DNA of 64,000 nucleotides from Octopus sinensis (GCF_006345805.1 NW_021833076.1:62001-126000), one strand, 5' to 3'; positions 3,927 through 63,187 are shown, numbered from the stretch's first letter. A program made the numbers and translations. Notes: a model not told the origin generated them from the sequence alone.

Positions 3927-5559
3927 CAGTCCGACCTCTAAATGGGGCACTAAGTGCCTCAAATCAGAGGTTTCCCCAAAAAAGAGGTTTTTCAAAAAGC
4001 TCAATAAATAAAGAAAAAGAACATTATTTTTTAAAATAATCAGTTAATTTTTCTCCATATTTATATTTATTTTTAATTCCTAACGACACTTTCTTTCTGA
4101 ATTCATAAAAATCATGAAGAGAATCTGGAATCAAATCAAAGATGTTTGTCTCTAAGTTTTCCATCAAACTTAAAATTTGTGATATTGATGGTTCGCAGCT
4201 TATATTCTCATAGATATTTGGATCATTATCTTCTATTTCATCAAAACATTTATCAATAACATTATTAAATATTTCTTCAGATGATTCATTTATGCAACTC
4301 GAGTCTGATGGAGATTGTCGAAAAACCTTTTGCCAGCAGTTATAAATAATATCCGCAGATACATTATTCCAAGCATCTGAGATTATTGTTACCACTTGCC
4401 GCAAATTTAATTTGGATAAAGACTATAAACAAATCCTGTTCGTCTTGAAAACATAAAAAATCAATTAGACAATTCAAATAATTATCCTTGAAATTTTTAA
4501 TGATTCCAGCATCCAATGGTTGAAGTATTGGTGTCGTATTTTTTGGTAAAAATAAAAAATCAACGTTGCTAAATGTCGATATTTTGTGGCAAGCAGCGTT
4601 ATCTAATAACATTAAGATTTTTCTTAAATGTCATCCACGCATTTTTGGACGAAGAGTATAAAATTCCATAAATTTTTGGAGAAAATTTTTGAAACATCTA
4701 GGATTTCTATATTTTCCGATTATTAATGGTTCAAATTTTTCTCCAGTGTAACTACAGCATAGATGAAGAGTAATTTTATCTTTACTCCTTTTAAAGCCCC
4801 GTGCCGAATCACCAGTTTTCACGAATGATTTACGTGGGGTAAGTTTGATAAAAAGAGAAGTTTCGTCACAATTAAAAATGTTCTCCTTTCCATATTGTTC
4901 AACTTTGATATTTAATTCTGATAAAAAATTCAAAATTATCGCATGATCAGCAGATGCGGATTCGCCTGACAATGTTCGGAATTTTAATTCATGCCTCTGC
5001 TTGAATTTTTCTAACCATCCATTTGAAGCTTTAAACTTGTTTAAGCCCATTCTCGAAGAAACAGTTAGGGAAATTTTTTTTAAAAGAGTTCCAGAAACTG
5101 GAACATTCTGATCCCTTAGACGCTGAAAAATATCAAGGACTTTTTCATCAAATCCGTTTTTATTTTCACTTAATGATGAGGAAAGAAATCCTTTTTTGAT
5201 AAATGGAAGAATATTCTTTTTTATACGAAAAATAGTTCCCTTGCTAGTATTGTACATTATGGATAATCTCCTCTCAGAATGTTCTTTCTTTAAAAGATGA
5301 TCAGCAATCTTCAACTTGGTTTCATAATTCAAAGGCATTACACAAGAAATTTGAAATGAAACGTGTCTTAAAATATTTATTTTTTTAATTGGTATAATTA
5401 ATTTTATTTAATAAAAAATCAATGCCCCAAATAGAGATGTTAAAATTAATTGATTTTTTATAATTTGGTTAAAAAAATTTATAATGCCCCAAAACAGAGT
5501 TTTCCCCAAAAAAGAGGTGCCCCACCCCTGGAGGTGCGCCCCAATTAGAGGTCGGACTG
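3927..5559 (-). mobile_element. Tigger/pogo DNA transposon, full length, transposase inactivated
   Basis: TIRs cagtccgacctcta / tagaggtcggactg flanked by TA at both ends. Transposase in three frames (5338-4024) with HTH-CENPB (KASNGWLEKFKQRH), FNCDETSLF, LLDNAACH and LQPLDAGII; frameshifts and an internal deletion near 4630. Confidence 0.93.
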
Positions 5560-10010: not shown

Positions 10011-12089
10011 TTAAGGAATCAGTCTTTGCAAGCTGACTTGGTCGTTGCTGTCACTCATCGAAATGAATATAGTCACGAGGATACCCCTTCCCCCGCCAAA
10101 TGAAGAGAGGCCACGAAAAGCATGGCGGGCGACAAGTTATCCCTTGTGGACTGTGGCACATTGGCAGCCACTGCGTCGAATATGTCAATCATTCTGACCG
10201 GCTTGGAGTCCAACTCGGAAATAATGGCAGATTTGAGTTTCTCCATATTCACTCGCCGAGAACTTTTGGTAAAGGAAATGTCGAGAAGGGCCACCTACAA
10301 ATAGGGGGAAACATGACTTTATTGGGGTTATCGATGAGATTCAAATAGGGAGAGACACACGTCTGGGCGGGCGAACAGGCAAATCCATTTTCGGTCTCAG
10401 AATTCTACACATGAAAAATATAGCCTACTGGCAAGTCGTTGGCTGTGCCCAAATCAATGTCATGTAGTCACCCGCCTCCTGATTAATAACTGCTTGAACA
10501 CAGGGGTCCTCCCCGACTGTTTCGGCAGACTGAAATAGTAAATGAGGGAGAACAATAAATCTGGTCTGAACAGAGTCGAATTTGAATATATCACGAATGT
10601 TCAGTTTGGGGAGTTTGAGGTAAGTATTGTTGAGGGTCCCAAACTTGTCCTTTCTGAGCATCGAGGAGACGAAGGAGAACGGACTGCCCTCCCTCTTGTG
10701 ACTGCATAATTCCTTCTTTTCAATCACCACCCTCGATGGTCTCCTTTTTCATCTTCCTCTTCTTGGGCTGCCCCGACAAAACTACAGTCGACAAAGATCA
10801 CAACCACACGAGTCACTGGGCACATTCCTGGCACCTGAACGGGGCAGGGAGTGTAATTCGGTCAGCAGACGAGTGTCGAAATACGAATATTCTGATCGCG
10901 CTGAGGAAAACAGACTGTAAATTTTGTCTATCGAAAGGGGATACAAAAGGAGGGGATTGAATGTCTGGTCGGCCACCTCTCCCACGTCGGGGACAATCGT
11001 GGCATCGAGGTCAATGCGGAGAGTGTCGTCGTGGCACATCTCCTCATATTCCTCAGACCTTTGTGAATCCCCGCCCCAATCAGTTCCCTGAATAATTTCC
11101 TTGGATAGTCAACACAGCAATTACCTCAGCCAATCCATCCCCCGCAAATGAAAATCCAAAAAGCGAGGACCCAAAAATATTGCGTCCCTTTTCATTAAAA
11201 GTGAGTTCTCCTATCGAATGCACACACAAAAGGACTGAGGTTGATCGGCAAGTCCTCCATCAGTGGTTCGTCGAGCACTTGGAACACCTGGTCGGAGGGG
11301 TCCAACGAGACAAGCCCCGAGTCGTCGAGAAGGACAGCCTTGTGTATCACGTCGTTCACAGTCTCTGCGTCTGGGTCGAGTGCCATGACTGATTTGAGGA
11401 GCCCACACATCTACAATGAGGACATCAATATTCCTTGTCCCCCGACTCAGCCACACTCTCAGTTATGTTCTTCAAATTCACTTCGATGATTGCCTTCTTC
11501 TTGCACCGCTTTTGTTTGGTTGGCGCTGTTTCCTGCACTTTCTCCACTTGGACGGTCGATTCGTCACTTTCTTGAGGGTCAGGGACCAAGTCAACCATGT
11601 TCTTCAGTCGCCGGCTTTTTGCTGTGAATTCCGGCCCACACTTGGTGTGACTCGGAGTAGACGGCGTCCACTCTCCCCGCGTAGATCTTGACACTGGCAT
11701 CGAGGGCGGAGGTCATCATCTGGTAGTCCGAGTTGCCCTCGATCACGCTGCTGAAGTGGTCGATCAGGTGCAGGCCAAACGCGTTCTTGGATGTTATTTT
11801 CTGAAGTGGCATTGAATGGCTACGTTTTCCACACTCAGACGCACACAATTCCCGTACAGTTCGGCCAATTCCGCGGTGGAGTAGGAAAAGTGTCTAAATT
11901 GGGGGCTCCACTTCACTTTTTGGAGGAATCGACTGATTTTCTATTCTTGGCCATGAACGCCCTTTCTGTCGCTCGCAGACGTTTCTCGTCAGTGTCGTCG
12001 TTGGTCTGCATTGTGGTGGCACAGCTGAAGGAGGTGGTTCCTGCATTGCTCGAATATAAGGAAATGGAAGCTCGCTTGTTGTTTCCCAT
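10011..12089 (-). CDS. NCAPH: Condensin I kleisin CAP-H / Brn1
   Basis: NDDTDEKRL, ENKITSKNAFGLHLIDHF, ALDASVKIYAGRVDAVY, SEYSYFD and C-terminal RVNMEKLK...NLSPAMLFVASLHLA. About 10 micro-introns; the last exon boundary is approximate. Confidence 0.9.
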
Positions 12090-12160: not shown

Positions 12161-12861
12161 TTAGCAACAGGAATTAACAGATTTGGATAGTTTGTCCAAT
12201 ACAACCCCAGAAGTGTCGCCGGTGGGGATGCTCGCACTATTCTTGAGGTCACTGCACACCAAGTCAATATTTCCTTCACATTTATGTTCTCCTTAGCAGA
12301 AGACTCAAAGAACCGCACTCCTATCTGTCAGAATGACCACCCAAATGTGCGGCCAACTCCTGTCCGTCCTGTGTGGAGATGACCTTCGTCTCGACCAAGT
12401 CAGATTTGTTGCCCACCAAGACGACTCGGGCGTTGTCCCACGAGTGAGTTTGTATTTGGGATATCCTTCAGTCAATCCCCACCCAAACCAGTCCCGGGCA
12501 GCCTGGAAGGACTCTTCGTTGGTCACGTCATACACCAGAATGAATCCCCTCGGTAGTAGGCCGTCGTGATTGTCCGGTAACGTTCTTGTCCGGCCGTGTC
12601 CTGTCACTCATCACTCCCCTCTACCCAGATTTGCAGTTTTATTCGCTTGTTGTCACGGAAAATGGACTTGACTTTGAAATCAATGCCCACCGTCGACACA
12701 AAGCAAGTACTGAAGGAGTCGTCGGCGTATCGGAAGAGGAGGGAGGTCTTGCCTGTGTTGCTATTCCCCACAATCAGTATTTTGAACATGTTGTCATACG
12801 AGTCCTCCCCTGCCTTGTCCATTCCTGTGTTGTGGGAGTTGATGGTTTTATAGTGGGCCAA
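12161..12861 (-). CDS. RAB3: Rab3-like GTPase; two frameshifting deletions in this sequence
   Basis: [29 protein letters not shown]|[19 protein letters not shown]|[34 protein letters not shown] and terminal NSCC*. Introns of 24, 23 and 20 nt; frame breaks near 12546 and 12266. Confidence 0.85.
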
Positions 12862-13197: not shown

Positions 13198-14080
13198 TTA
13201 ATCCCTGAGAGAATATCCCCTCCCCCATCTCGACCAAGAGGGGTAGTGGGGTGCACGTGAGTAATCCCCACCAAACCCACGCACTCTCACAGTGTCTCCG
13301 GCAAACATGCGTGTTCTAAGGGAATAGTGGCATAAGTACATGAAGGATGGAGTGGGGAGGAGTGTGGGTCGGCCGTGGATAGTCGGGTATTGTACGGCCA
13401 TGAAGTGATACAAATGCCCGGCCACAATCCCCACCAAGTCGTAGTAAAACCTGCAACTGAGCCCCCTCGATGTACGATTTATAGAGAATGAAATTGAAGG
13501 CAAGCAGAATCCAGGGAAGGTACACAGCCTTGAAGGTGGTGCCGAACCAGAAGGAGACGACCTGGGCTGAGTTGAACTGACACCAGACATACATCACGGA
13601 CATAACTAGAGGGACGGAGAGGAACTAGACTATTAAATGGGCTATACTGGGAATCCCACGAGGACGGACATGAACTAAAAAATACATCCCCACAGTACTA
13701 ACGAGGATAGCAACGGACAAAACAATGAGCATCCACACGTAGTCCCCCTTCCTGTTCATAAAAGTGCCTTCGATAGGGGAGGAGAGTACCTTCCTCGAGC
13801 ATGCGGGAGTAAGTGTAGAGGAAGTACATGTTCATCAGAAATACAAAGCCGGATTGGGGAGTCAGGTAGAACGTCAACAATGATGTAAGGGGTCGCCATA
13901 TCTAGGAATATATATCACTAATCCTCCCTCTAAATTGTAGACCACTCGAGAGGGGAGGTAGGCGAGGGAGGCATAGCTCAACAACCCGACATTGCCCAGG
14001 AGGGACAGTCCAGCAGTGAGTAATAGCCAGTAACGAGTCACGGAAGGAATAGAATTGAACCAGTCCTGGACATCAGACAT
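13198..14080 (-). CDS. DERL1: Derlin-1 (ERAD)
   Basis: MSDVQDWFNSIPSVTRYW, IWRPLTS, FLMNMYFLYTYSRMLEEG, VSFWFGTTFKAVYLPWILLAFN, GIVAGHLYHF and RWGRGYSLRD*. Six introns of 22-28 nt; the first has an atypical donor. Confidence 0.92.
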
Positions 14081-15157
14081 TAGACAACAAGAATAACACG
14101 TATTACTTTTTAATTACACAGAACAATATGTTATTCACTATTAGATTTATTATTTAATTAATACACTTGACGGTCTCTCTCTCCCTTTTTATATTTCGTC
14201 CTGTTTATCCAAATTGCCAATTTCATGCAGCCATTCTTTACTCTCGACTTATCGATTGTATAAGAAAGAGACACAATTTCATCGAATCGGCCCCAAATAT
14301 CTTATTACAAAGCTCAATTATTTTCCCCCGCCGCTCAACAATTTAATAAAATCTTTCATAATATATGAACTGCAAATACACCTCATACTTGCTGATTTTT
14401 ACAATCTCCACTTTCAAATTTTGAACAGATTTTATCCCCACGTGAGTCAAGAATACGATTCTTCTTTTCATCAAACAAATCTGGTTTGTCATGCTTCTAA
14501 ATTGTGTCCTGATAAATGTATTTTATTTCTAAAGACTCATTTACTGACACAGACTACACTGAATGCGTTTTTATTTTCATTTAAGGCAAAGCTCAAGACA
14601 CAAATGAAACTAAATGCACCAGCTTCATTATATCTCTCACATAATCGTAATGCTGGATTTTTCAACGCCTGATTGCACAGTGATCCACGCTTTGTTTCAT
14701 TCATTAAGGGGCATTCAATTCTGATTATCTCAAACATTTGAAGAAAATTATTTGTATCAAAAATATTCTTCAATATTTGCCAAACATGTATCCTCTGAAA
14801 TTTCTGCCGGAAGAATTGGGAAACTCCTTCTGCAATAACCACTCGGAATCGTAAATCCAAAGAGCGTACTTAACATGGAGACTGATCAGAATCCCCTTAG
14901 CTAAGGACAAGTATGCTTGTTGTTTCCCCAGAACTCCTCGACTAGTTAGGGACAAGGGCTAATATATCTGCGACGTTTCATTATTTTATTACTTCAGTCA
15001 GACTGAACCAATCCAAAGACCTATCTCATCCCATAATAGGTTGCATACACTCTTGCGAACATGGAAGTGTCCCAATTGGCTATAATGAAAAGGAATGATG
15101 AACACTTGCAAGATTAAAAGAAAGATTAAAAGGAACAAGAACCGAAAATTAAGAGTT

Positions 15158-17780
<2,623 letters not shown>

Positions 17781-26000: not shown

Positions 26001-29000
26001 GTAAAAATACACGCACTCGGAAAATAGCATTCGCCTCAGTCTGTCCAATATTTTACTTGGTGAGTCACTCTCCGACACGGTAAATTGAGATCCATTGCCA
26101 AAGTGAAATCGAAAATAACTGGGACTCAGATGTGTGACAATTTTATGCAAAATAATCTTGCATTTTGGCAGTATCAAATCACGTGTCGAGTCAAGACCTA
26201 AGAATGAGGGGTCTGAAAATACCAAGAACTGCAACATGAAGAACGAGTGGCGCAATTTAGAGAAACTCGGCGTCTGTCGTGTGCATTATAATTTCCTCTG
26301 ATATAAAGAGAGCAGAAAAACAGCTGAAATTGAGTGAATATAGAAACATGGGAAAATCGCGAAGGGAAATGGATTCCACTGGGAAGTAGTCTTTTAAGTT
26401 CATAAACAAGGACGGGTTCACAGAGAATAGCTCATCTTGATTACCAAAATCGTCTTCAGGAGGCAAACTGGTCGACCCGTCTTTGATATAAAGGGAATCC
26501 TCTTTAAGGAAGGAATAGTATGGAATTGTCAGCGTTCGAGTGAATCTGCAGTTTGTGGGAGTTGGACTAATCAAGTCAAGTTGGACCTTCTGTAAGACGA
26601 CGTGGGCAATGGGGGACTGGACTATCCACCGCATAATACAATTACTCTAAGAGTCCCCAATTGGCACTAACCACCAACATGAATTTATTTGGCATGACCA
26701 TGGCCATCATTTTGAGATATTCATAAATCACTTCAAAGTTGTTGTGTACTGAACTCAGAGTTGACCACAGACAACCAACTTGAACAGCATATGAATCCAT
26801 GAACTTACAACATAGAGTAGCACAATACCTTAACTGTGATGAACATGAGGTTATTAAGAACAAGGTCAGTAATTTGCACACCACGACTGCTCTCGCTAGT
26901 CCGGACCAATTGAATATTTGCGAGCCACGGCTGCAGGACTTGGAAAATTGCCAAAAGCACAGAGTGAGATGCGATCAAGATTTTAGCCGACAAATCTAAA
27001 ACAGGCAAATAATATTTTATAACATAAAAACGAAATCAACCACTGACCTGAAAAAATGTTAATTGAAAGATGATCAAAAATATGCGAAAACTGAGTGGAC
27101 GGGGACTGGAAGTGTACTCCCTCGGAGGGAGCGAGGACATTGAACAAGTAATCAGGAAGATCGAGAGTGGAGAGCATCTTGTTTGATGACATCTCTAACA
27201 GTAATTGATGGGAGAGAGTGACGGCGTCGTGGATAGGAAAACAGGAAACAACCAGTGAAAATACAAATAACTCTATAAATAGAGAACGAGGCAAATGACT
27301 AGGAATATAATGATAAAACCAACCAGGCCAATGCAAAGGGTGCAAAGGATATGTAGTAGCGGGAAAACTCGTGGACTGGGGAACTATAGCAGTGACATAT
27401 GATATAATGAATGTGCTGCGTATCACTTCTCAACAATCCTCCAAACAAATGGGAACACAACATAGCCTACAATGAGGAGACGAAATAACATTATTTTCAG
27501 CGGCTTCGTATAGGCCAAAAAAATATCGACCACAGAACTCTTCTGCGTCGAGGAATGCGCCACAAGAGACCAACCGAATTATGGCGTCATCACACATTTT
27601 GACCAGACCGATGTCGCCACTAGGGATTGGAATCCTCGGTCTAGAACGAATATGGATTATAATCTACGAAATAGATCCAATACTGTTTTCCACGTCACCA
27701 CGTGACTTCCACTCTGAAATGAATTCAAACATGTCGAGTCGGACATTTGGAGGAATTAAGCTAGTTCGAATAGAGTCTATAGGGATTATATCCAGCAATG
27801 GGGACCAGGCAGTTGGTCCACAAAGAGCGAAAAAAAGGCTAGAAACAAAAACTTCTGTTCATACAATCCCGAATTATTCGAGTCGAAACAACAGAAGGCC
27901 GAATGCCAGTTAACCAGGAATTCAACGACAACGGAAATAAAGTCAGTTCTTCCAATGTGAATTCTAAAATATACTCATCTCGGGCAACCTTATTTTCATA
28001 TAACCATTCCGACACAACTGGGTGAGAGTTCGAATCACATTTGAACAAATCAGCATTTTCCGTTTCCTTCGGGAACTCTTCTCAACTTTTTTGTCGACAC
28101 ACTCTCTCATAATGGGGGATAAGTCTGAAATAACGTCGCTGGGGTCATAAATGAGACCAACTAGATGTTGTGCGCTGACAAATGGCCGAGAGACACGATT
28201 GCACATTCTGACATTTCAGGACTCTCCCCTCGAAGTGCTGATATGAATAGTCGCAGCATTTGGAGACAGGACATTGTGCCCATGTTTACACTCGCAGAGC
28301 TTTCGGAGACGTCGGATTTATCCTTTAAGAACCTAGAATTGTAGAATGATGACCACTCGTAAGAGTCGTTCAACAATGTGCAGTAGATCACCGAAAAGCC
28401 CTGCCAAACGGACACGAAGGTACTCCCATACTTCCTTGTGACTAAACTACGGAATAATGACGTCGTTTCTGTCCTTCTAAATACAAATTAGCAAATCACT
28501 TGTAGATGTTGGAAGAATGATTCGAATTGTTGTATAAAGCTACGAGACGCAAATGGATGAGGTGGACTGCAGTTGAAAAGACAGGGGACTCTCTCGACTT
28601 GTGCAGAAGAATCGAGTGGAGGAGTTGAGAATATATCTGAATCCATAGACCGTGACCGTCCGCTATGGACTCGGAATAGTCATGTTTTTTGAACATGGAC
28701 AAATCAGTGAAGAACTGACAAACTCTCCAAACCCAATTCAACTCGCCAGCACAAGGATAAATCTCGGCCACCTGGAAAATCACGGAAATAATTACATTCG
28801 ATACTCCTAAAAACTCGGATAGAAAACCCGGAAGTATATTCACCAACTCTTTGTCGATTGCCGATTTCAGAGACATCTCGGAATGCTTACGGAATAAGGA
28901 GGTGAACTCTTACACAGGTCAACTCATCTGCGACAACCAGCAATTGACAGCCGAGGTGTTTGGACGAAGTCTCAGGGAGAGTTAGAAAAAAAAGAGCGGT

Positions 29001-33068: not shown

Positions 33069-34538
33069 ATGGTTATTTCGAATGGCTATGTTCTGCTGTT
33101 CTCTCTATTGCTGACTGGAATGGATGTCTTGTATAGTTTCCACATAAATCGAGAATACTACCCCTCCATTAATTATTTATTCACGTCCAAGCTCTCCCTC
33201 ATGGTGCTCATTAGAGGAACTAAAATTGCAGATTATGGGATTTCAAGGTCTTGTAATTCTGTACGAGATTGGGCAGCTGACTGTGAGGTTATTAGTGGGG
33301 AGACTGCTTAGCGCGGAGATAGAAGTATTGGTAGATGTGATAGTTCAGACTATCAAGGATAAGTTCTTTGTTTTCTGCATGGAGGTGGGACTGATGGTCT
33401 CCTTCTCCTCCATCCACCAGACTGAGAAGAACTACTCCATTTATGTCTTCCTGCTGGTCACCATCCTCCAATGCTTCCATTGGATCCTCGCCATCAAAAT
33501 TGACTCGGTTGACTGTCGGGAGTGTTTGTAGATGCACCGAATGGCCAGAATATCCCCCTTATTCATGTTCCGCACTCTACTTTTAATTCTCATTCTTCTC
33601 TTCTGTGACTTGGCGAGTGTCATTCGGAGGGGACAGTTCTCGATATACTCCATCCTCTCCTTCGAGGTGGCCCTCATGACCATCGACCTCTTCAACTCGT
33701 CCTTTCGATTCTTCCTCTACTTGTACGACCACTTCAATGGGGACTCGGACTCCTCGGGGTGTCTCCTCTACGCGGACTGCTTCTTTGGTATCCTTCCACA
33801 TTTACTCAGTCTCCCTCAAATTCATATGCAATTTGTTGTACTGCATCGGACTCGTCTATTCCTCCTTCCTCCCTCTCCACTTGCTCAGGAGGACGTACAT
33901 ATTCTTCCAGTACTCGTCGTGCTAACTGGCAGCACGGCCTCTGTTCATTGGACCAACATCGTCAACTCCCGACATGTCATGGCCGTCCTGCAGCAGCCGT
34001 ATTGGCAGTTGATTATTCCAGACAATTCGATGCCCTCCAAAGTGACTTGGAGAGGGACGACATGTGCATCATTTGCAGGGAGCCCATGGTCCCCCTCGAA
34101 GCCAGGAAAATAATGTGTGGCCACGTTTTCCACATGCACTGTCTTCAACGGTGGCTCCAACAACAGCAGACATGTCCAATGTGTAGGGCGGACATCAAAA
34201 TCCCCACTCCTCCAAGTCCTGTCCTCACTGATTTGGCCGGCCTTCACCCTTTTAGCGTGGGTCAGATGCCCCTCATCCCCGAAATGTTGAATGGACTGAG
34301 TGATGCCGAATTGTCAATGATCGAGTCCATGGAGAGGAGTGCTATTCTCCACCGAATTGAGTGTCTGAGGGATATCAACAATCTGCTCAATGCCGCCGCT
34401 CTTCGCATGAACCAATACAATCTGTTGTTTCCCCCTTTAATGTGCAGAGTCGTGAATGCCCCCCCAGACCAGACGGGCGGATTGACACAGGAAGAGATCC
34501 GGCAGAGGAGAGTTGATGCCATCAGACGGGGACTATAA
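33069..34538 (+). CDS. SYVN1: ERAD E3 ligase HRD1/synoviolin
   Basis: Multi-TM N-terminus (YYPSINYL, LQCFHWI, SFEVALM, FLPLHLLRRTY) and RING-H2 CIICREPM...CGHVFHMHCLQRWLQQQQTCPMCR. Six introns of 22-28 nt. Confidence 0.92.
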
Positions 34539-43402: not shown

Positions 43403-44389
43403 TCAATAATCGCCAATACGGAGAGCCTCAGTCCTCATCCATTCAGTTTCAATAATCTGGTCGATTGTAGGGCGCATGAGTGGGTCGAATGATAGCATTT
43501 GGAGGACTGTGTCAATGCAACATTTTCCGTATATATCCTCAGTTTTAGGAGGAAACTCGTAGTTCATGAGCTTCATTTGTTTTATAATATTGTCCATTGC
43601 ACTGACAGTTCCTACGGTTCCCACTGTAACAGCCATTTTTCCGCTGATCATAAAATAAAGAACAACACCGAGACTGAATATATCCGCACACTTTGGGTCA
43701 TATTTATTTGCTGCGTTCATGATCTCTGGAGCACAGTACCCAGGGGTCCCACACACTGTACTACGCAGATGTTCGTCAGGGTCAGGACAATTCTCAGTCT
43801 TGCAGGAAAATCCAAAGTCTGTCAGTTTAATGCAGTTCTCACAAATAAGAATATTTTCCAACTTAATGTCTCGGTGGACAATATTATTTGTGTGCAAGTA
43901 CTGGACAGTCCGAGCGAGCTGTGAGTTACAACGTCTCCCAAAACTTGATAGAAGTAGCGACTAGTTTGGGAAACGGAAAATCGCTGTCGTTTGCTGAAAT
44001 AGTTATGCAAATCTCCCCCTTTGGCCAATTCCATAAAAATATACACTTTGTCATCCAAGTCAACAATATCTTTTATCTACAAGTTATTAAGACGTCGAAC
44101 ACATTTCAACGTCATATCAAACCTCGACTATTCCGGGATGAGAAACCGACTTGAGAATTTCTAGTTCGTTGGAAATATAGTTGTTTATTTTGGACCCACT
44201 CATTGCCGTTTTGTCGTACACTTTACATGCATATTTTTCCTGGTTCTGCACTAACTCCGCCATCCGTACGATTCCCGTCGACCCTTTCGCGAGAAACCAG
44301 CACAATTTCCAACCACGCTCCATTAGTTTACCGTCGTCTTGGCCGTTCAATATTATCAAGTTCGGCCTCTTATGACGAGTAGTCATCAA
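43403..44389 (-). CDS. CAMK-group Ser/Thr kinase, TSSK-like
   Basis: LAKGSTG, YACK, NELEIL, VYIFMELAKGGDL, HRDIKLEN, TDFGF, CGTPGYCAPE and DIFSLGVVLY. Introns of 46 and 26 nt. Confidence 0.85.
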
Positions 44390-45818: not shown

Positions 45819-45892
45819 GATCGTCATGTGGTTCACCTTCTCGTGGAGACGATTGGATGCTGATTTCACATCAGCAAACACAAACAGAACCA
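45819..45892 (+). ncRNA. Candidate HDV-like self-cleaving ribozyme at the LINE 5' end
   Basis: P1 gatcgtc/gacgatt with G-U at the first pair, L3 ttctcgt, GG after P1', P4 tgctgat/atcagca, P2 tggttc/gaacca. P3 has one mismatch and J4/2 is long. Confidence 0.55.
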
Positions 45893-45963
45893 ATTTTTCC
45901 CCCTTGCCAACCAACCTGTCAACGGTTGGTTGGTTAGTAGTGGCTACGGGACGAGCGCCAAGC

Positions 45964-46023
45964 TTACGTTCCCTGACTCTATTGTTGATTCGGTGTGGAG
46001 ATGTGGAACAAAACCCTGGACCT
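45964..46023 (+). other. 2A (StopGo) ribosome-skipping peptide LTLLLIRCGDVEQNPG|P
   Basis: Exact D(V/I)ExNPGP consensus (45997-46023) with a hydrophobic upstream helix, directly before the APE domain. Confidence 0.9.
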
Positions 46024-49000
46024 GAGCCTATTAGAACACTAACCATCCTTCAATTGAACATCAACGGGATTTCCAAGAAATGCAATGACCTACGCTACTT
46101 TCTACACACGAACTCTATTGATATAGCTCTTATTCAAGAGACCAAACTTACTCCAAAATCCCAAACCCCCCGTTTTAAGGGTTATTCCACCATTCGTCGT
46201 GACCGCCAGTCTGGAAAGCCTGGCGGTGGTGTCTCATCTCTCATTCACGAGGCCATTCCCTTTGCAGACTCAACTGCCAACATTGAATCTCTCTTAACTA
46301 ATGATCGATTTACCGAAATTTCATCTATTCAAATTAACATTAACAAGATATGTTACTCTGTTGTTAACACATATATCCCCCCGATTTCGTCATGTGCTCC
46401 CAATTATACACCGAACTTACTGCCTCTTTTTTCAATTGAAAACTGTATTCTATGTGGCGACTTCAACGCCCACCATCCTCTCTGGTTATCCACAAACAAA
46501 ACTGACAAACGTGGCCAGCAAATCACAACGGATGCGGAAGAATTGATCACTCTAAACAACCCTCTTCTACACACCCGCTGTGCAATGCGACCTGGAGATT
46601 CAAACACTTCTCCTGACATTACCTTATGTTCCCCAAACATCGCCCTCGACGCCAAATGGACAGTTCTGTACGACCTACCAACGGACCACAATCCTATTCT
46701 AATCAAATAAATAAACATCACCCTGTAAAGAAGAGAATTACGAAGACCTACATTAACTACAAACGTGGGAAATGGGACTCGTTCAGGAGTGAAACTGAAC
46801 GTATATTCAGTATTTTTTCTTGCTCCTCCATTCAATCATTTGACACTGCCGTTGCTTTCTTTACTAGTACACTTCTTTCTGCGGACAAAAAATTTATCCC
46901 CGCGGCTTCATCCGAAATCACGGCCTCCATTTCCCCCCACCTATCATTGAACTATTCAAAAAACGAAGGAGGATCAAATCGACGACTTCTATCAATGGAA
47001 ATGGAGAATCTCTAGCAGAAATCAACAAACAAATTGACGAATTAATCAAGAAACATAAAACTGACGAATGGAATGATTTTATCACTTCAATAACCCCAAA
47101 TACTGGATCCCGTGCTTTCTGGAGAACCCTCAAGAAAATTCACACGAGGCAAACATGTCCCCTCTCACATGCCACCGGTACCTCGACCAAAAAATCTGTC
47201 CTATCTTTCCAGGATCAAGCCAACATCTTAATTCGCCATTATGCAAAAATCAGTCACCTTCCTACCCCAAAGGATCTCCGTTTCGTAAGAAAATCACATT
47301 ATAAGTCAAATGACAATTCTACTGACTATATTAACATCCCAGAATCATTTACCAGGCAACTTGTTGTTAACTCGCGGAATTCTAACGCCAGAGGTCCTGA
47401 TGGCCTTGCCATCCACACCTAAAAAATCTGGGTCCTAATGGCTTTCTGGCTCTGACCAATTTAATCGAATACTCGATCAACCATGGTCTGGTTCCTATGC
47501 TTTGGAAGAAATCTACCATCATCCCTATCCCAAAGCCAAATCGTGATACTGACCCTCCTCTTTTCGACCTATCTCTTTGATCTCAGTGGTTTCAAAAATA
47601 ACAGAGCGAGTTGTATTGAGCATCATAAAACCTTTCCTCCCATTTGCTGAATCTCAACATGGCTTTCGTTCTTTGCATTCCACTTCCACCCATCTTTCAA
47701 AACTGACACAATTCATTGCGGATGGGTTTAACAATCATAAGCCACCTCAAAGAACAATTATTGCATCCATCGACATTGAAAAGGCATTTGACAGAACGTC
47801 AAGACACGTTCTGTGTAGGAAAATAACCGATACGGAATTCCCCCACCAAATAAAGTCATGGCTACTCTCTTTTCTCTCTGGGCGTCTTGGTCGCACCACA
47901 ATCATGTCTTCTTACTCACGCTACAAATACTTGCCTAACGGAGTTCCCCAAGGCTCGGTCCTTTCACCTGCCTTATTTAACTTACATCTGTCAAATATCC
48001 CGACGAACAATAATACTCTACTTCTCTCCTACGCTGATGACTTAATTTTTGCCTCCCGCCACCAAAACATAATCACCGCTTCTGGATTTCTGCAGGAACA
48101 CATGAACACTCTTTCGTCCTGGCTGAAATGCAATCTTCTTCAACCTTCTCCTTCCAAATCATCTGTTACGCTATTCACAACTGACCGCCGTCAGTTCAAC
48201 TTAGAGCCTAAACTATTCCTAGACAACACTCCACTCCCAGTTGAAAAATCCCCCAAAATCTTGGGTCTGATATTTGATTGCTGTTTGTCCTTCTCGAAAC
48301 ATGTTTCATATATCTGTGGAAAATCCCAGAAAAAACTCAATGTGCTCCGAGCTATTGCGGGGACTTCATTTGGGCAGGATAAGGAAAGTCTAACAACTGT
48401 ATACAAGCAGTTTATTAGAACAACTATGAACTACGCCATCCCTGCTTGGGGTTCCTGCTTATCTAATACAAACCTTGAAAAACTTCAGAGAACTCAAAAC
48501 TCAGCATTACGAATTATTACCGGCTGTCTAAAAACGACACCTACCGACCACCTACATTGGGAATCGAAAATCCTTCCAATCAGTGACCATTTTGAAATGC
48601 TCGGGCTGCAATTTCTTGACAAATGCCGAACCCTAAATCACCCTGGCTACTTCCTCTGGCACTCCACTAACAACAGGAGAATAGTTCCGACCCTCGCGGA
48701 CAAAGTCCGCAAGCTTATACGATCCCCTCCGGACATTAACCAGAAGGGGATTCACGACCTGGTGGCTACGAGGACAATCAGATGTCTTGGAATAAACAAG
48801 CTTCTGGGACGCCTTCCGCCGCCAATTAATAAGATCGAATCCTCCCTCTCAAGAGAAGCCCGAGTGAACTTGGCTCGTCTCCGCTGTGGCCACCATACTG
48901 GCCTACACGATTATCGCATAAAAATCGGTCTTGGTGAAATAACCCCTTCCTATTCCCTCAACGACCTTTTCTCCTGTCCAGGCCCGCCTTCTACTTCCTC

Positions 49001-49721
49001 GGAACACCGGATCACGATCGGGGATCTTTGGGAGCGTCCGACATTGGCCCTAACGTTCTTGTTAGCCACCGGCTTCCTTCAATTGAAGGGGCCGGGGGTA
49101 AATAAATAAATAAATGTAGCCTTAAATTCAAAGCGCGATTTTGTCAGCATTTGTCATTGCTGAGGAATGCAGGATTGTGAGATGATTGATTTGAATTAAC
49201 TTTGTTTTAAAACAAGACAAAACCATCGATTATTAGCCAATCAGTTAACAGGTTCCAATTAAATCAGTCCGTAGAAAGCTGAGAATAAGGCCTATAAATA
49301 AGACCGTGGTTGCTTAAATTACAAATACATTAAATCCGGATCTGAAAATAAAAGTGAAATTTAGGATTGACAAGTCACTTAAACAAAACATAATATTTTA
49401 GTGAAATTGGTTAATTACGAGTTTACGTAAAACTGTAGTTATCGTAAAAGTAGTAGTTCCCGGGAGGGTCCTCTACTTTGATTGCGTTTTGGCTGTTTGA
49501 CCAATCGCTTTTTCCATTCTGTTTTAAAAGCGGGATTTTTTCTTGCTTGATTAGACTCAGCAAATTGTCAATGCTCCGGGAAAGACCTTTAATAGGACAC
49601 TGACAAAATTAGTGAGAGATCTGCACCGTAATTCTGGGATCTGCTTCTTCTTTTACAGATTTGTTAATTCTGGTCTTTCGAATCCCCTGCTTCTTTTTCT
49701 TCTTTGGTTGTGTAGTGGAAC

Positions 49722-55715: not shown

Positions 55716-56481
55716 TCAATCGTCATCCAAGCATTTTTTGATGCAGTGTACAAAACCTAAAAATAATCTAATACAACATACTCCATAATCTTCAGTTTTT
55801 ATATTTTTTAAGCATCTTGGAGATTTGAATTTCCCGATAACAAGGGGCTTTAATTTCTCACCCCCAAGGCTGCAGCATAAAAGAACCGAAACTCGTTCTT
55901 TACTTTTTGTTTTACCGAAACAGTTATCATTCGAAGACACAAATGATTTACATGAATTCTTTTTGACAAAAAGGGATGTTTCGTCACAGTTGAAAATATC
56001 TTTTTTCTCGAATTTATCAAATAAATTGTCGTACTCATTAAAAAAATCTTCGATCTTATCTTTGTCGCACAAGTTCTTTTCTCCGGAAATTACTTTAAAC
56101 AGTCATTCGTGACGTTTTTTAAAACGATCCAACCATCCATTCGATGCTTTAAAATTATCGAAGTTAAGGTTCGATGCAATTTTTTGCAACAGTTTTCAGG
56201 AGAAATCCTGAAACTGAAATCCCATCTTCTCTCAAATTTTTAAAAACTTCAAAGACTAATCGATCAATTCGAATAGAAAGATCTGATTCAAAGTTCTTAA
56301 ACGAGTGTTCATCAGAGCACGTTTCTGCTTTTGAAAATCCTTTTCCAATTTCTTTTTTAATTCTTGAGACAGTTCCTTTCCCAATATTATATAATCGACA
56401 AATTTTTCTTTCAGAAATATCTCCTTTCATTAATGATTCGGAAATCGTTTGCTTCAAGTTCTGACTAAGCTTCGCTGGCAT
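55716..56481 (-). mobile_element. Tigger/pogo transposase fragment, related to 3927-5559
   Basis: HTH (ISERKICRLYNIGKGTVSRIK), KASNGWLDRF, FNCDETSLF and KERVSVLLCCSLGGEKLKPLVIGK. Truncated; TIRs not found. Confidence 0.85.
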
Positions 56482-56552
56482 GCTTAAAAATATTTAAAAA
56501 TTAATAAAATAAAGAATAAAAATGAAATAATAAATTTTAATATTATCGATTA

Positions 56553-61270: not shown

Positions 61271-63187
61271 CAGTAAAGCCTCTGGTGCTCGCCACCTCTG
61301 TTACTCGCCACCTCTATTGCTCGCCACATATTTTTCAAAAAATTAAAAATTTCTAGTAAATTTTGATAAATATTCTATTGCTCGCCATTTTCTAAATCTC
61401 GCAATTAATTTTTTAAAATATTTTTTTGGTTAAACTATTTTTTATAAAATATTTCATCCACGCTAAATTCAATATGCGTAAGTGCGCAAGATTGTCTTTT
61501 AATGAAAAATGTCGCATTATTGCGTACATGGAGGAGAACAAAAGTCTCACGATGGACCCTTATAGCTTACATTTTTTCTTCTGTTTTGAAGAACAAAATA
61601 TCTCGAAGGGCTGTGAACGATTTAAGACTTGGAAAAGAGAAAATAATGTCTACTGATCCTATTTTCTCCAATAAGAAGAGATTATCTAATCTAACTTATT
61701 CTGTTATTGACACCGAACTATTAACTTGGATGGAATATATTGAGCTTAGAGGGGGGTTTCTGGACGATAATTCAATTTTGTTGAAAGAAAAGAACATTGC
61801 TAATATTTATGGAATTAAAGAGTTTAAAGCCAGCAATGGATGGCTAAGCAAGTTCAAGATACGGAACAACTTAAAATTGAGGACTTTACATGGAGAATCA
61901 GGATCTACTGCAGTTGATCAGAAACAAGAAATTGATGCATTTACTTCTTTGATCTCTGCAAAGATTCGACAATATAATGCTGAAAACATTTATAACGCTG
62001 ATGAAACTGGGATTTTTTACAAATCTATCCCTTCAAAAAGTGTTTGTCAGAAGGTCCCATATGGACATAAAATCCTTAAAGAATGGTTTAATTTTTATTT
62101 ATTTTTTTAGATTTTCTTTGTTGCTATGCTCAAATATGACTGGGACAGACAAAAAATTCTACTTATGATTGGAAAGTTCCAGAAACCTCGCTGGTTTAAA
62201 AATTTTAAAGTCGAAAATTTTGTCGATTACTGTCATTCACCAAAAGCATGGATGACAAGTAAAATTTTTAAGGAATGGCTTTTAACATGGGATAGGCATC
62301 TAAAGAAACGAACAAATTCTTTTAGTTGTAGATCGATGCCCATCCCATAAACTTTACGCTGATTTACAGTCAATTGAAGTTCTTTACCTACCTTCGAAGA
62401 CTACAACAATTCTACAACCAATGGATCAAGGAATCATTAGATCCTTCAAAGGACATTTTAATAAACTTAAATTTGAGTTAATGTTAGAAAAAATTGAAAA
62501 TGGAAAAAATCCACTGGAAGCACATAAAAAATTAACATTAAAAGACGGTCTTCTTTTTACATATTTTGTCTGGAAAAAAGTAACGACCAAAACAATTACA
62601 AATTGTTTCGAACATTCAAAATGGATCGAATGTGAAAATCAACTCGAAAGACCAACTGTTGAAATTGATAATTATGATCAAATGGTAAATATCTTGAAAA
62701 TATTGGACCGTCTGGATAAAGATGTTTTTATTAATCATGAATTTACCGAAATAGATGAAATTGAAGATTACCTTAATATTGCTGGAGATTCTTTTTCACA
62801 AAAATATGACGATGAAGATACTCATAATGACGAATCTCATGTGAATTCAGAAGAGGCTTTGAAAATGTTGAAAAGAATAAAGTCATTCTTTTATCAAAAT
62901 GAAAATTTTGATATAAATTCGTTGGAACTAATCGACACCGTTATTAGAAATATGGCTGAATTAAAAAAAACTATTAAATATTTTTTTAGTTAATTTTTTC
63001 CTTTTAATTTCTTTCAATTCTCTTTGTTTCTTCGCTCAAATATGACTTGAAAGGCTCACTTATGATCGGAAAGTATCGAACACGGAGATGTTTTCAAAAT
63101 TTCAATGTCAACAAATTTATTGATTATTTATATTGCTCGCCATTTTTTCTTCGGTCCCGAAAATGGCGAGCAATAGAGGCTTTACTG
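61271..63187 (+). mobile_element. Tigger/pogo DNA transposon, full length, inactivated, with a 25-nt intron
   Basis: TIRs cagtaaagcctct / agaggctttactg flanked by TA; subterminal ctcgcca repeats. Transposase has KASNGWLSKFKIR, YNADETG, KAWMTS, VDRCPSH and LQPMDQGII; frameshifts. Confidence 0.93.

Follow-up and report, generated by a model that had tools for sequence, protein, structure and literature searches.

Introns with a GA or GG donor make up only about 0.006% and 0.014%, respectively, of human introns (PMC5714493), and the only documented cases of percent-level use of such donors are a copepod and appendicularians. In the copepod, Eurytemora affinis, an exon-end AG before GA and GG donors is obligate and an A at position +3 is almost universal (Robertson 2017, PMC5714493), and the same flank has been described for Eurytemora together with the appendicularian Oikopleura dioica (Frey and Pucker 2020, PMC7072748). 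Here we describe a candidate intron of this kind in the gene for the condensin kleisin NCAPH, located on a 64,000-nucleotide (nt) stretch of DNA filed under Octopus sinensis (GCF_006345805.1, NW_021833076.1:62001-126000). This whole stretch is referred to below as the window, and all positions are counted from its first letter. We consider it likely that the 23 nt at 11433..11411 on the minus strand are a real GA-AG micro-intron of NCAPH, and from the reading frames, the intron lengths and the neighbouring genes we infer that the spliceosome uses this GA site and not the GT site of a possible 44-nt intron.

The NCAPH candidate is similar to the GA/GG introns of Eurytemora (PMC5714493) and the GA-AG introns of Oikopleura (PMC7072748) in its G[AG] start, its AG end, the AG with which the exon before it ends and the A at +3. 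As in those two animals, there would be several such introns per genome beside GT and GC donors, and software that permits only GT and GC breaks the gene models. Our counts for GA and GG donors are about 3 in about 50 introns, or about 4 in about 51 when GC is included, all in one 64-kilobase (kb) window. Unlike the introns of Eurytemora and Oikopleura, the putative introns described here are 22-26 nt long in a genome with a median intron length of 25 nt; furthermore, the host is probably a spiralian parasite, unlike the copepod and tunicate hosts. In their length they are similar to the ultra-short introns of dicyemids and myxobolids, which are 20-30 nt and have a 5' signal consisting of little beyond the first bases (PMC6736024, PMC6543705, PMC13644364). 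Those descriptions, however, rest on annotated GT-AG introns, and the literature that we searched makes no mention of GA or GG donors for dicyemids or myxozoans. The kind of intron (AG/GAA, GA-AG; the slash marks a splice border) is already known, and it is the setting that is new, a 23-nt intron in an animal with ultra-short introns.

On the minus strand the segment at 11433..11411 reads GAATATTGATGTCCTCATTGTAG and is flanked by AAG and ATG (caAG/GAATATTGATGTCCTCATTGTAG/atg). The text on its 5' side ends in GGGGACAAG and that on its 3' side is ATGTGTGGG, so that in minus-strand order GAGTCGGGGGACAAG is followed by GAATATTGATGTCCTCATTGTAG and then by ATGTGTGGGCTC. The upstream open frame runs through KKAIIEVNLKNITESVAESGDK; without splicing it continues (...SGDKEY) and meets a TGA stop after two further codons, at 11427..11425; the unspliced text across the junction is GACAAGGAATATTGATGTCC. 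A second frame starts immediately 3' of the TAG at 11413..11411 and encodes MCGLLKSVMALDPDAETV. Once the 23 nt are removed, frame 1 of NCAPH continues in frame 0, with the product reading ...NLKNITESVAESGDK/MCGLLKSVMALD... and a predicted joined text of GAGTCGGGGGACAAG^ATGTGTGGGCTCCTC or GAGTCGGGGGACAAG^ATGTGTGGG. Sliding the borders by 1-2 nt (GG..TA or AG..GT) leaves the mRNA identical, and an AG acceptor is obtained only with GA..AG. The segment has the GA start, the AG end, the exon-end AG and the +3 A, and its 3' end, TGTAG, is like that of neighbouring introns. On re-reading, we found that an earlier sequence-only reading of this locus had given the coordinates, the strand and the text (AAG, 23 nt, ATG) correctly, and that its frame logic, in which the unspliced frame reaches TGA and removal of the segment joins both frames, was sound. 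Its assignment of the gene to condensin NCAPH is borne out by the spliced product, which matches Pfam Cnd2 (PF05786) with 104 bits and our own profile hidden Markov model (HMM), built from 105 condensin kleisin homologues, with 197 bits. The N- and C-terminal ends of the product also match yeast Brn1 structures.

The canonical competitor at this junction is a 44-nt GT-AG intron (11454..11411) that uses the same acceptor. The sequence-only reading had already pointed to this in-frame alternative and to the seven residues (VAESGDK) that it deletes, and both are as it described. The GT lies at 11453..11454 (minus strand, context gagt/GTGGCT), and the joined text predicted from this model is AACATAACTGAGAGT^ATGTGTGGGCTCCTC or AACATAACTGAGAGT^ATGTGTGGG. 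Against Pfam Cnd2 the GA model scores 104.4 bits, with residues 2-298 aligned as one stretch, versus 102.6 bits for the 44-nt GT model, whose alignment ends at residue 160. Against our own profile the two models score 197.5 and 195.3 bits, respectively; with the GA model, NLKNITESVAESGDKMCGLLKSVMA aligns without gaps to nlenlnvkkfdlefevDPLFkktsa, and the downstream exon is likewise ungapped against DPLFkktsa.aFDeGGakgLLLnnL. The distance from NLKNI to the DPLF-like motif is 28 residues in both human and mollusc, compared to 27 under the 23-nt GA model and 20 under the 44-nt GT model. The earlier argument that splicing from the GA donor reproduces the length of a human NCAPH segment was roughly right, but it is a weak one: the gain in homology when the frame is restored is small, the GA model being ahead on the profile by no more than about 2 bits. 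As the BLASTP alignment to the sole close database homologue ends at NLKNI, just 5' of the junction, it does not decide between the models. Overall, homology taken by itself weakly favours the GA model, at about 4-5 to 1.

The context of the segment is a stronger argument for a GA-AG intron than its homology. For comparison we curated 47 GT-AG introns within the window. Their median length is 25 nt and 45 of them are 20-32 nt long (the remaining two, the longest, are 46 and 51 nt), which places a 23-nt intron within the length mode. The segment is more than a chance match because it interrupts a Cnd2 gene, has the modal length and ends in TGTAG.

Two neighbouring genes, Derlin and VCP/p97, also appear to need introns with non-GT donors, GG-AG in the former and GC-AG in the latter. 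These genes were analysed with our own protein-to-genome aligner, which is blind to splice dinucleotides, using human VCP, DERL1 and RAB3A as queries; the VCP query segment was afterwards checked against ten database homologues. In Derlin, the gapless join YNLE/IWRP requires a 26-nt GG-AG intron at 13927..13902 (minus strand, agAG/GGAGGA...CCTAG; predicted join GTCTACAATTTAGAG^ATATGGCGACCCCTT). With this intron the product scores 195.6 bits against Pfam DER1, compared to 188.3 bits for a 17-nt GT intron that adds three amino acids and 181.6 bits for a 41-nt GT intron that removes five (advantages of +7.3 and +14 bits, respectively). In VCP, eight of the nine introns resolve as GT-AG introns of 22-26 nt. 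At the ninth junction, only a 27-nt GC-AG intron (15901..15927, minus strand, taAG/GCTGCA...AGTAG; predicted join GACATTTTCGATAAG^GCCAGACAGGCGTCT) preserves the invariant IFDK/ARQASPC (FDKAR); of the GT options, one (18 nt) inserts three residues and the other (27 nt) loses the invariant Arg. The GC-AG model scores 106.3 bits against Pfam AAA (102.1 and 100.7 bits for the GT options) and 202.7 bits against a VCP-specific profile (196.4 and 195.2 bits, a difference of +6.3 and +7.5). This is one probable GC-AG intron in the window.

A further candidate, in the Furry gene, came from a scan for introns that bridge open reading frames (ORFs) and have the flank AG/G[AG]A. It is a 22-nt GA-AG intron at 26274..26295 (minus strand, agAG/GAAATT...GACAG; predicted join CTCTTTATATCAGAG^ACGCCGAGTTTCTCT) that bridges ORFs of 129 and 162 codons, both of which sit between the N- and C-terminal Furry Pfam domains. 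There is no one- or two-intron GT-AG solution of <=80 nt at this junction, the shortest single GT-AG intron being 82 nt, and no homologue of the middle region of Furry was detectable in a database search. The remaining junctions of the Furry stretch mostly have ordinary GT-AG solutions of 20-30 nt.

The donor flanks of these introns are alike: caAG/GAAtat in NCAPH, agAG/GGAgga in Derlin and agAG/GAAatt in Furry, with the GC donor of VCP also following AG. Non-GT donors appear to recur in Furry (AG/GAA) and Derlin (AG/GGA). An exon-end AG is present in 11/47 of the GT introns and a +3 A also in 11/47, both together in 3/47; the AG..A flank occurs at 2.4% of arbitrary minus-strand G[AG] sites. 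The NCAPH and Derlin introns were identified without using the flank, and the chance that both have it comes to about 0.4% if taken from the GT-intron rate and is lower if taken from the background rate. There was a modest enrichment in an ab initio test, in which allowing AG/G[ACG] donors added two introns in real genes, compared to four in total for 23 control contexts. An ab initio Viterbi parse (codon log-odds, with free or G[ACG] donors) was rejected as a line of evidence and kept for the listing of candidates only: spurious antisense genes took any donor, and several real junctions were mispredicted. Taken with the Derlin, VCP and Furry models, the NCAPH segment suggests that the window genome probably tolerates non-GT donors that standard gene finders miss.

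Several observations weigh against a GA-AG intron in NCAPH. When all one- or two-intron GT-AG solutions with introns of 15-70 nt were enumerated at the junction, one plausible canonical solution, the 44-nt intron, did emerge. (The others were rejected: a 68-nt GT-AG intron would delete a conserved motif, and the two two-intron solutions found have micro-exons of just 2-4 nt.) Introns of 40-50 nt are rare in the window but present, the longest curated ones being those of 46 nt in a CAMK-like kinase (44077-44122) and of 51 nt in Derlin (13625-13675, minus strand). Homology across the NCAPH junction is weak: the 904 in-frame junctions that we scored on the NCAPH profile span 187-201.6 bits, with the GA model at rank 48 and the GT model at rank 272, and this range is too narrow to fix the borders. 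The closest identity in the protein database is 42% for NCAPH and 72% for VCP. The Furry case was selected on its flank and is therefore not independent evidence for that flank. Lastly, there are signs of small indels in the window, namely at a GGGG run in a Rab3-like gene and at off-by-one junctions in NCAPH (10428..10405) and Furry (27864..27839).

Of the alternatives to be considered, the first is that the 44-nt GT-AG intron is the one removed, so that VAESGDK is intronic and the inner AG/GAA a coincidence, or that both 5' sites are used. Although this solution is canonical, has counterparts of 46 and 51 nt in the window and would lose little in score (1.8 bits in Pfam and 2.2 bits with our own HMM), we regard it as unlikely. 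Just 2/47 curated introns are longer than 32 nt, the profile alignment breaks at the junction, and the spacing of NLKNI and DPLF would be reduced to 20 residues from the 28 found in human and mollusc. In addition, the extra 21 nt that would become intronic have a G+C content of 62%, versus a mean of 44% for intron interiors. The AG/GAA falls at the one in-frame position that yields a 23-nt intron, for which the chance is about 2%, and a like pattern is present in three neighbouring genes where homology is decisive.

The second alternative, that the organism has GT at this site and the GA is an assembly or consensus error (through loss of a T from GTAATATT, or through misreading of T as A) or else a rare allele, appears to us improbable. 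It is true that one base change or one deletion separates the text from a consensus AG/GTA donor, that the Rab3-like gene has a 1-nt frame problem in its GGGG run besides the two off-by-one junctions, and that heterozygosity is 1.24% in Dicyema japonicum (PMC6736024), should that be the source. The affected base, however, lies outside any homopolymer, and the AG/GTA context from which such an error would have to start is found in just 3/47 GT introns. Moreover, three or four introns, those of NCAPH, Derlin, Furry and VCP, would each have to be hit exactly at +2, none of them homopolymeric there, and so many errors at that one position are not credible as assembly error. No frameshift is present in the VCP coding sequence of about 2.2 kb, and the lesions in Rab3, NCAPH and Furry look like homopolymer indels or real lesions, a different type of error from changes at +2. 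The loss of a single T, which the sequence-only reading had entered as a caveat, is made unlikely by the three further non-GT donors of normal-length introns in neighbouring genes.

The weakest alternative is that nothing is spliced and the locus is a pseudogene or two cistrons, with the TGA at 11427..11425 closing the first ORF and ATG 11410 opening the second. It draws on the ATG directly 3' of the segment and on the frameshift in the adjacent Rab3 gene, but is highly improbable. The other exons are open over about 560 codons, the N- and C-terminal domains are conserved, and the segment has a normal intron length and a TGTAG end; in addition, the condensin ring depends on the kleisin as an essential single-chain component, which counts against a broken or split gene.

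For the preferred GA-AG intron, we propose that the U2-type major spliceosome would remove the 23-nt segment with GA in place of a GT donor. The first G would be the only strongly conserved donor feature in the window genome, and a minority of donors would tolerate A, G or C at +2 if the exon ends in AG, with a +3 A also being needed for GA and GG donors. The exon-end AG, the +1 G and the +3 A may retain enough U1 pairing and U5/U6 contacts to offset the lost +2 U. GC-AG introns are a common minor class of U2-type introns that have G at +1 and are processed by the major spliceosome. The NCAPH donor resembles theirs in being non-GT with G at +1, but differs in having A at +2 and in being far rarer in most genomes. 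We rejected a U12-type intron, as the donor GAATATTG does not correspond to /[AG]TATCCTT and there is no TCCTTAAC-like branch site in the 23 nt. A GA donor is also found in human FGFR1-3, where it is used by the major spliceosome and reportedly requires that a canonical GT lie six bases upstream (work of Brackenridge et al. 2003, cited from PMC7072748). The NCAPH candidate shares the GA 5' site, but its upstream hexamer is GACAAG; we rejected the FGFR type because there is no GT six bases upstream. The compensation would take place in a genome whose donor logo has shrunk to about 'GTa' in any case (PMC13644364). Proposals for other lineages include a U1 variant or altered modification of small nuclear RNA (snRNA) (PMC7072748, PMC13326754). 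When the window was scanned with Rfam and for tRNAs there was no match, and there is no snRNA gene within it. Since the same exon-end AG and +3 A are seen in Eurytemora and Oikopleura, their compensation for the lost +2 U would, if the NCAPH reading is true, argue for convergent evolution under a common mechanistic constraint.

The intron lengths in the window, 20-32 nt in nearly all cases, point to a dicyemid-like animal host. As far as is published, animals with introns as short as these are dicyemids or myxobolid myxozoans (PMC6736024, PMC6543705, PMC13644364). The best database match of NCAPH is a mollusc and flatworms are prominent among the VCP matches, and for this reason we lean towards a dicyemid. 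There was no marker and no identical database sequence, the protein searches covering NCAPH, VCP and the central part of Furry. We suggest tentatively, and at somewhat less than even chances, that the lineage of the window, most likely dicyemid, has relaxed 5' recognition to 'G only', with several percent of its 22-27-nt introns being AG/GA, AG/GG or AG/GC. If so, common GA/GG donors would be present in one more animal lineage besides copepods and appendicularians, for the first time in one with ultra-short introns, in which a spliceosome working at the lower limit of intron length also dispenses with the +2 U. It would also mean that published annotation of ultra-short-intron genomes limited to GT and GC donors systematically breaks or truncates genes such as NCAPH, Furry and Derlin and biases intron statistics, and that essential genes such as that of the condensin kleisin would seem broken or missing in the resulting gene sets.

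The NCAPH/Cnd2 coding region as a whole extends over 10076..12011 on the minus strand, from an ATG at 12011..12009, and encodes about 560 amino acids. Its plain GT-AG introns are 23, 23, 25, 25, 25, 29 and 23 nt long. Upstream of the candidate, these include intron 1 (11894..11916, 23 nt), intron 2 (11801..11823, 23 nt) and intron 3 (11571..11595, 25 nt), the last of which keeps the conserved VWAGI; downstream they include an intron of 25 nt at 11100..11124 and the last confirmed intron, of 23 nt, at 10295..10317 (NPNK/VALLDISF), all on the minus strand. The exon 5' of the candidate intron (11434..11570, minus strand) encodes ...ESDESTVQVEK...IIEVNLKNITESVAESGDK, in which BLASTP to a mollusc condensin subunit 2 reaches NLKNI. 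The exon on the 3' side (11228..11410, minus strand) encodes MCGLLKSVMALDPDAETV...INLSPF and may reach 11216. The next junction (11188..11227, minus strand) can be read as a 40-nt GT-AG intron (11227..11188) or as a 28-nt GA-AG intron (11215..11188); the GA-AG reading (ttc/GAT) is without the AG..A flank and was not counted.

Two other places in NCAPH deserve mention. At 10405-10471 on the minus strand, before NSETENGF, a 23-nt TA-AG segment fits (ccaG/TAGG...), and a single base separates it from a perfect 24-nt GT-AG intron (10428..10405); an all-canonical solution would take two introns, of 29 nt and 24 nt, with a 14-nt micro-exon between them. At 10530-10553 on the same strand, an in-frame, stop-free 24-nt segment of the form GT...TTTCAG (GTTCTCCCTCATTTACTATTTCAG) could be a hidden intron within a counted exon.

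In the Rab3-like gene (minus strand, about 12545-12555) the frame breaks at the GGGG run (about 12548..12551) between YYRG and GFILVYD, with 2 nt of the conserved switch II segment present where 9 are expected. Either the assembly contains an indel here or the gene was inactivated recently, in what may be an animal without neurons. The homology-only aligner proposed a 17-nt intron here; it would remove the conserved switch II, and we prefer a frameshift. In Furry, a good 26-nt GT-AG intron at 27864..27839 on the minus strand (GTATGAAC...TTTCTAG) misses the frame of the long ORFs on either side by one base, and a T7 run after the acceptor suggests an error in homopolymer length.

The neighbours of NCAPH in the window comprise the Rab3-like gene, Derlin, VCP/p97, Furry (MOR2-PAG1_N and _C), an HRD1-like RING protein, kinases and transposon ORFs. 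Derlin, VCP/p97 and the HRD1-like RING ligase are genes of endoplasmic reticulum-associated degradation and lie within about 21 kb (13198-17650 and 33235-34538), which may be coincidence. Pogo/Tigger-like DDE transposase ORFs are located at 4027-5407, 55719-56493 and 61448-62990, and a long interspersed nuclear element (LINE)-like pair of endonuclease and reverse transcriptase at 45826-49109. These transposon ORFs fit a repeat-rich genome.
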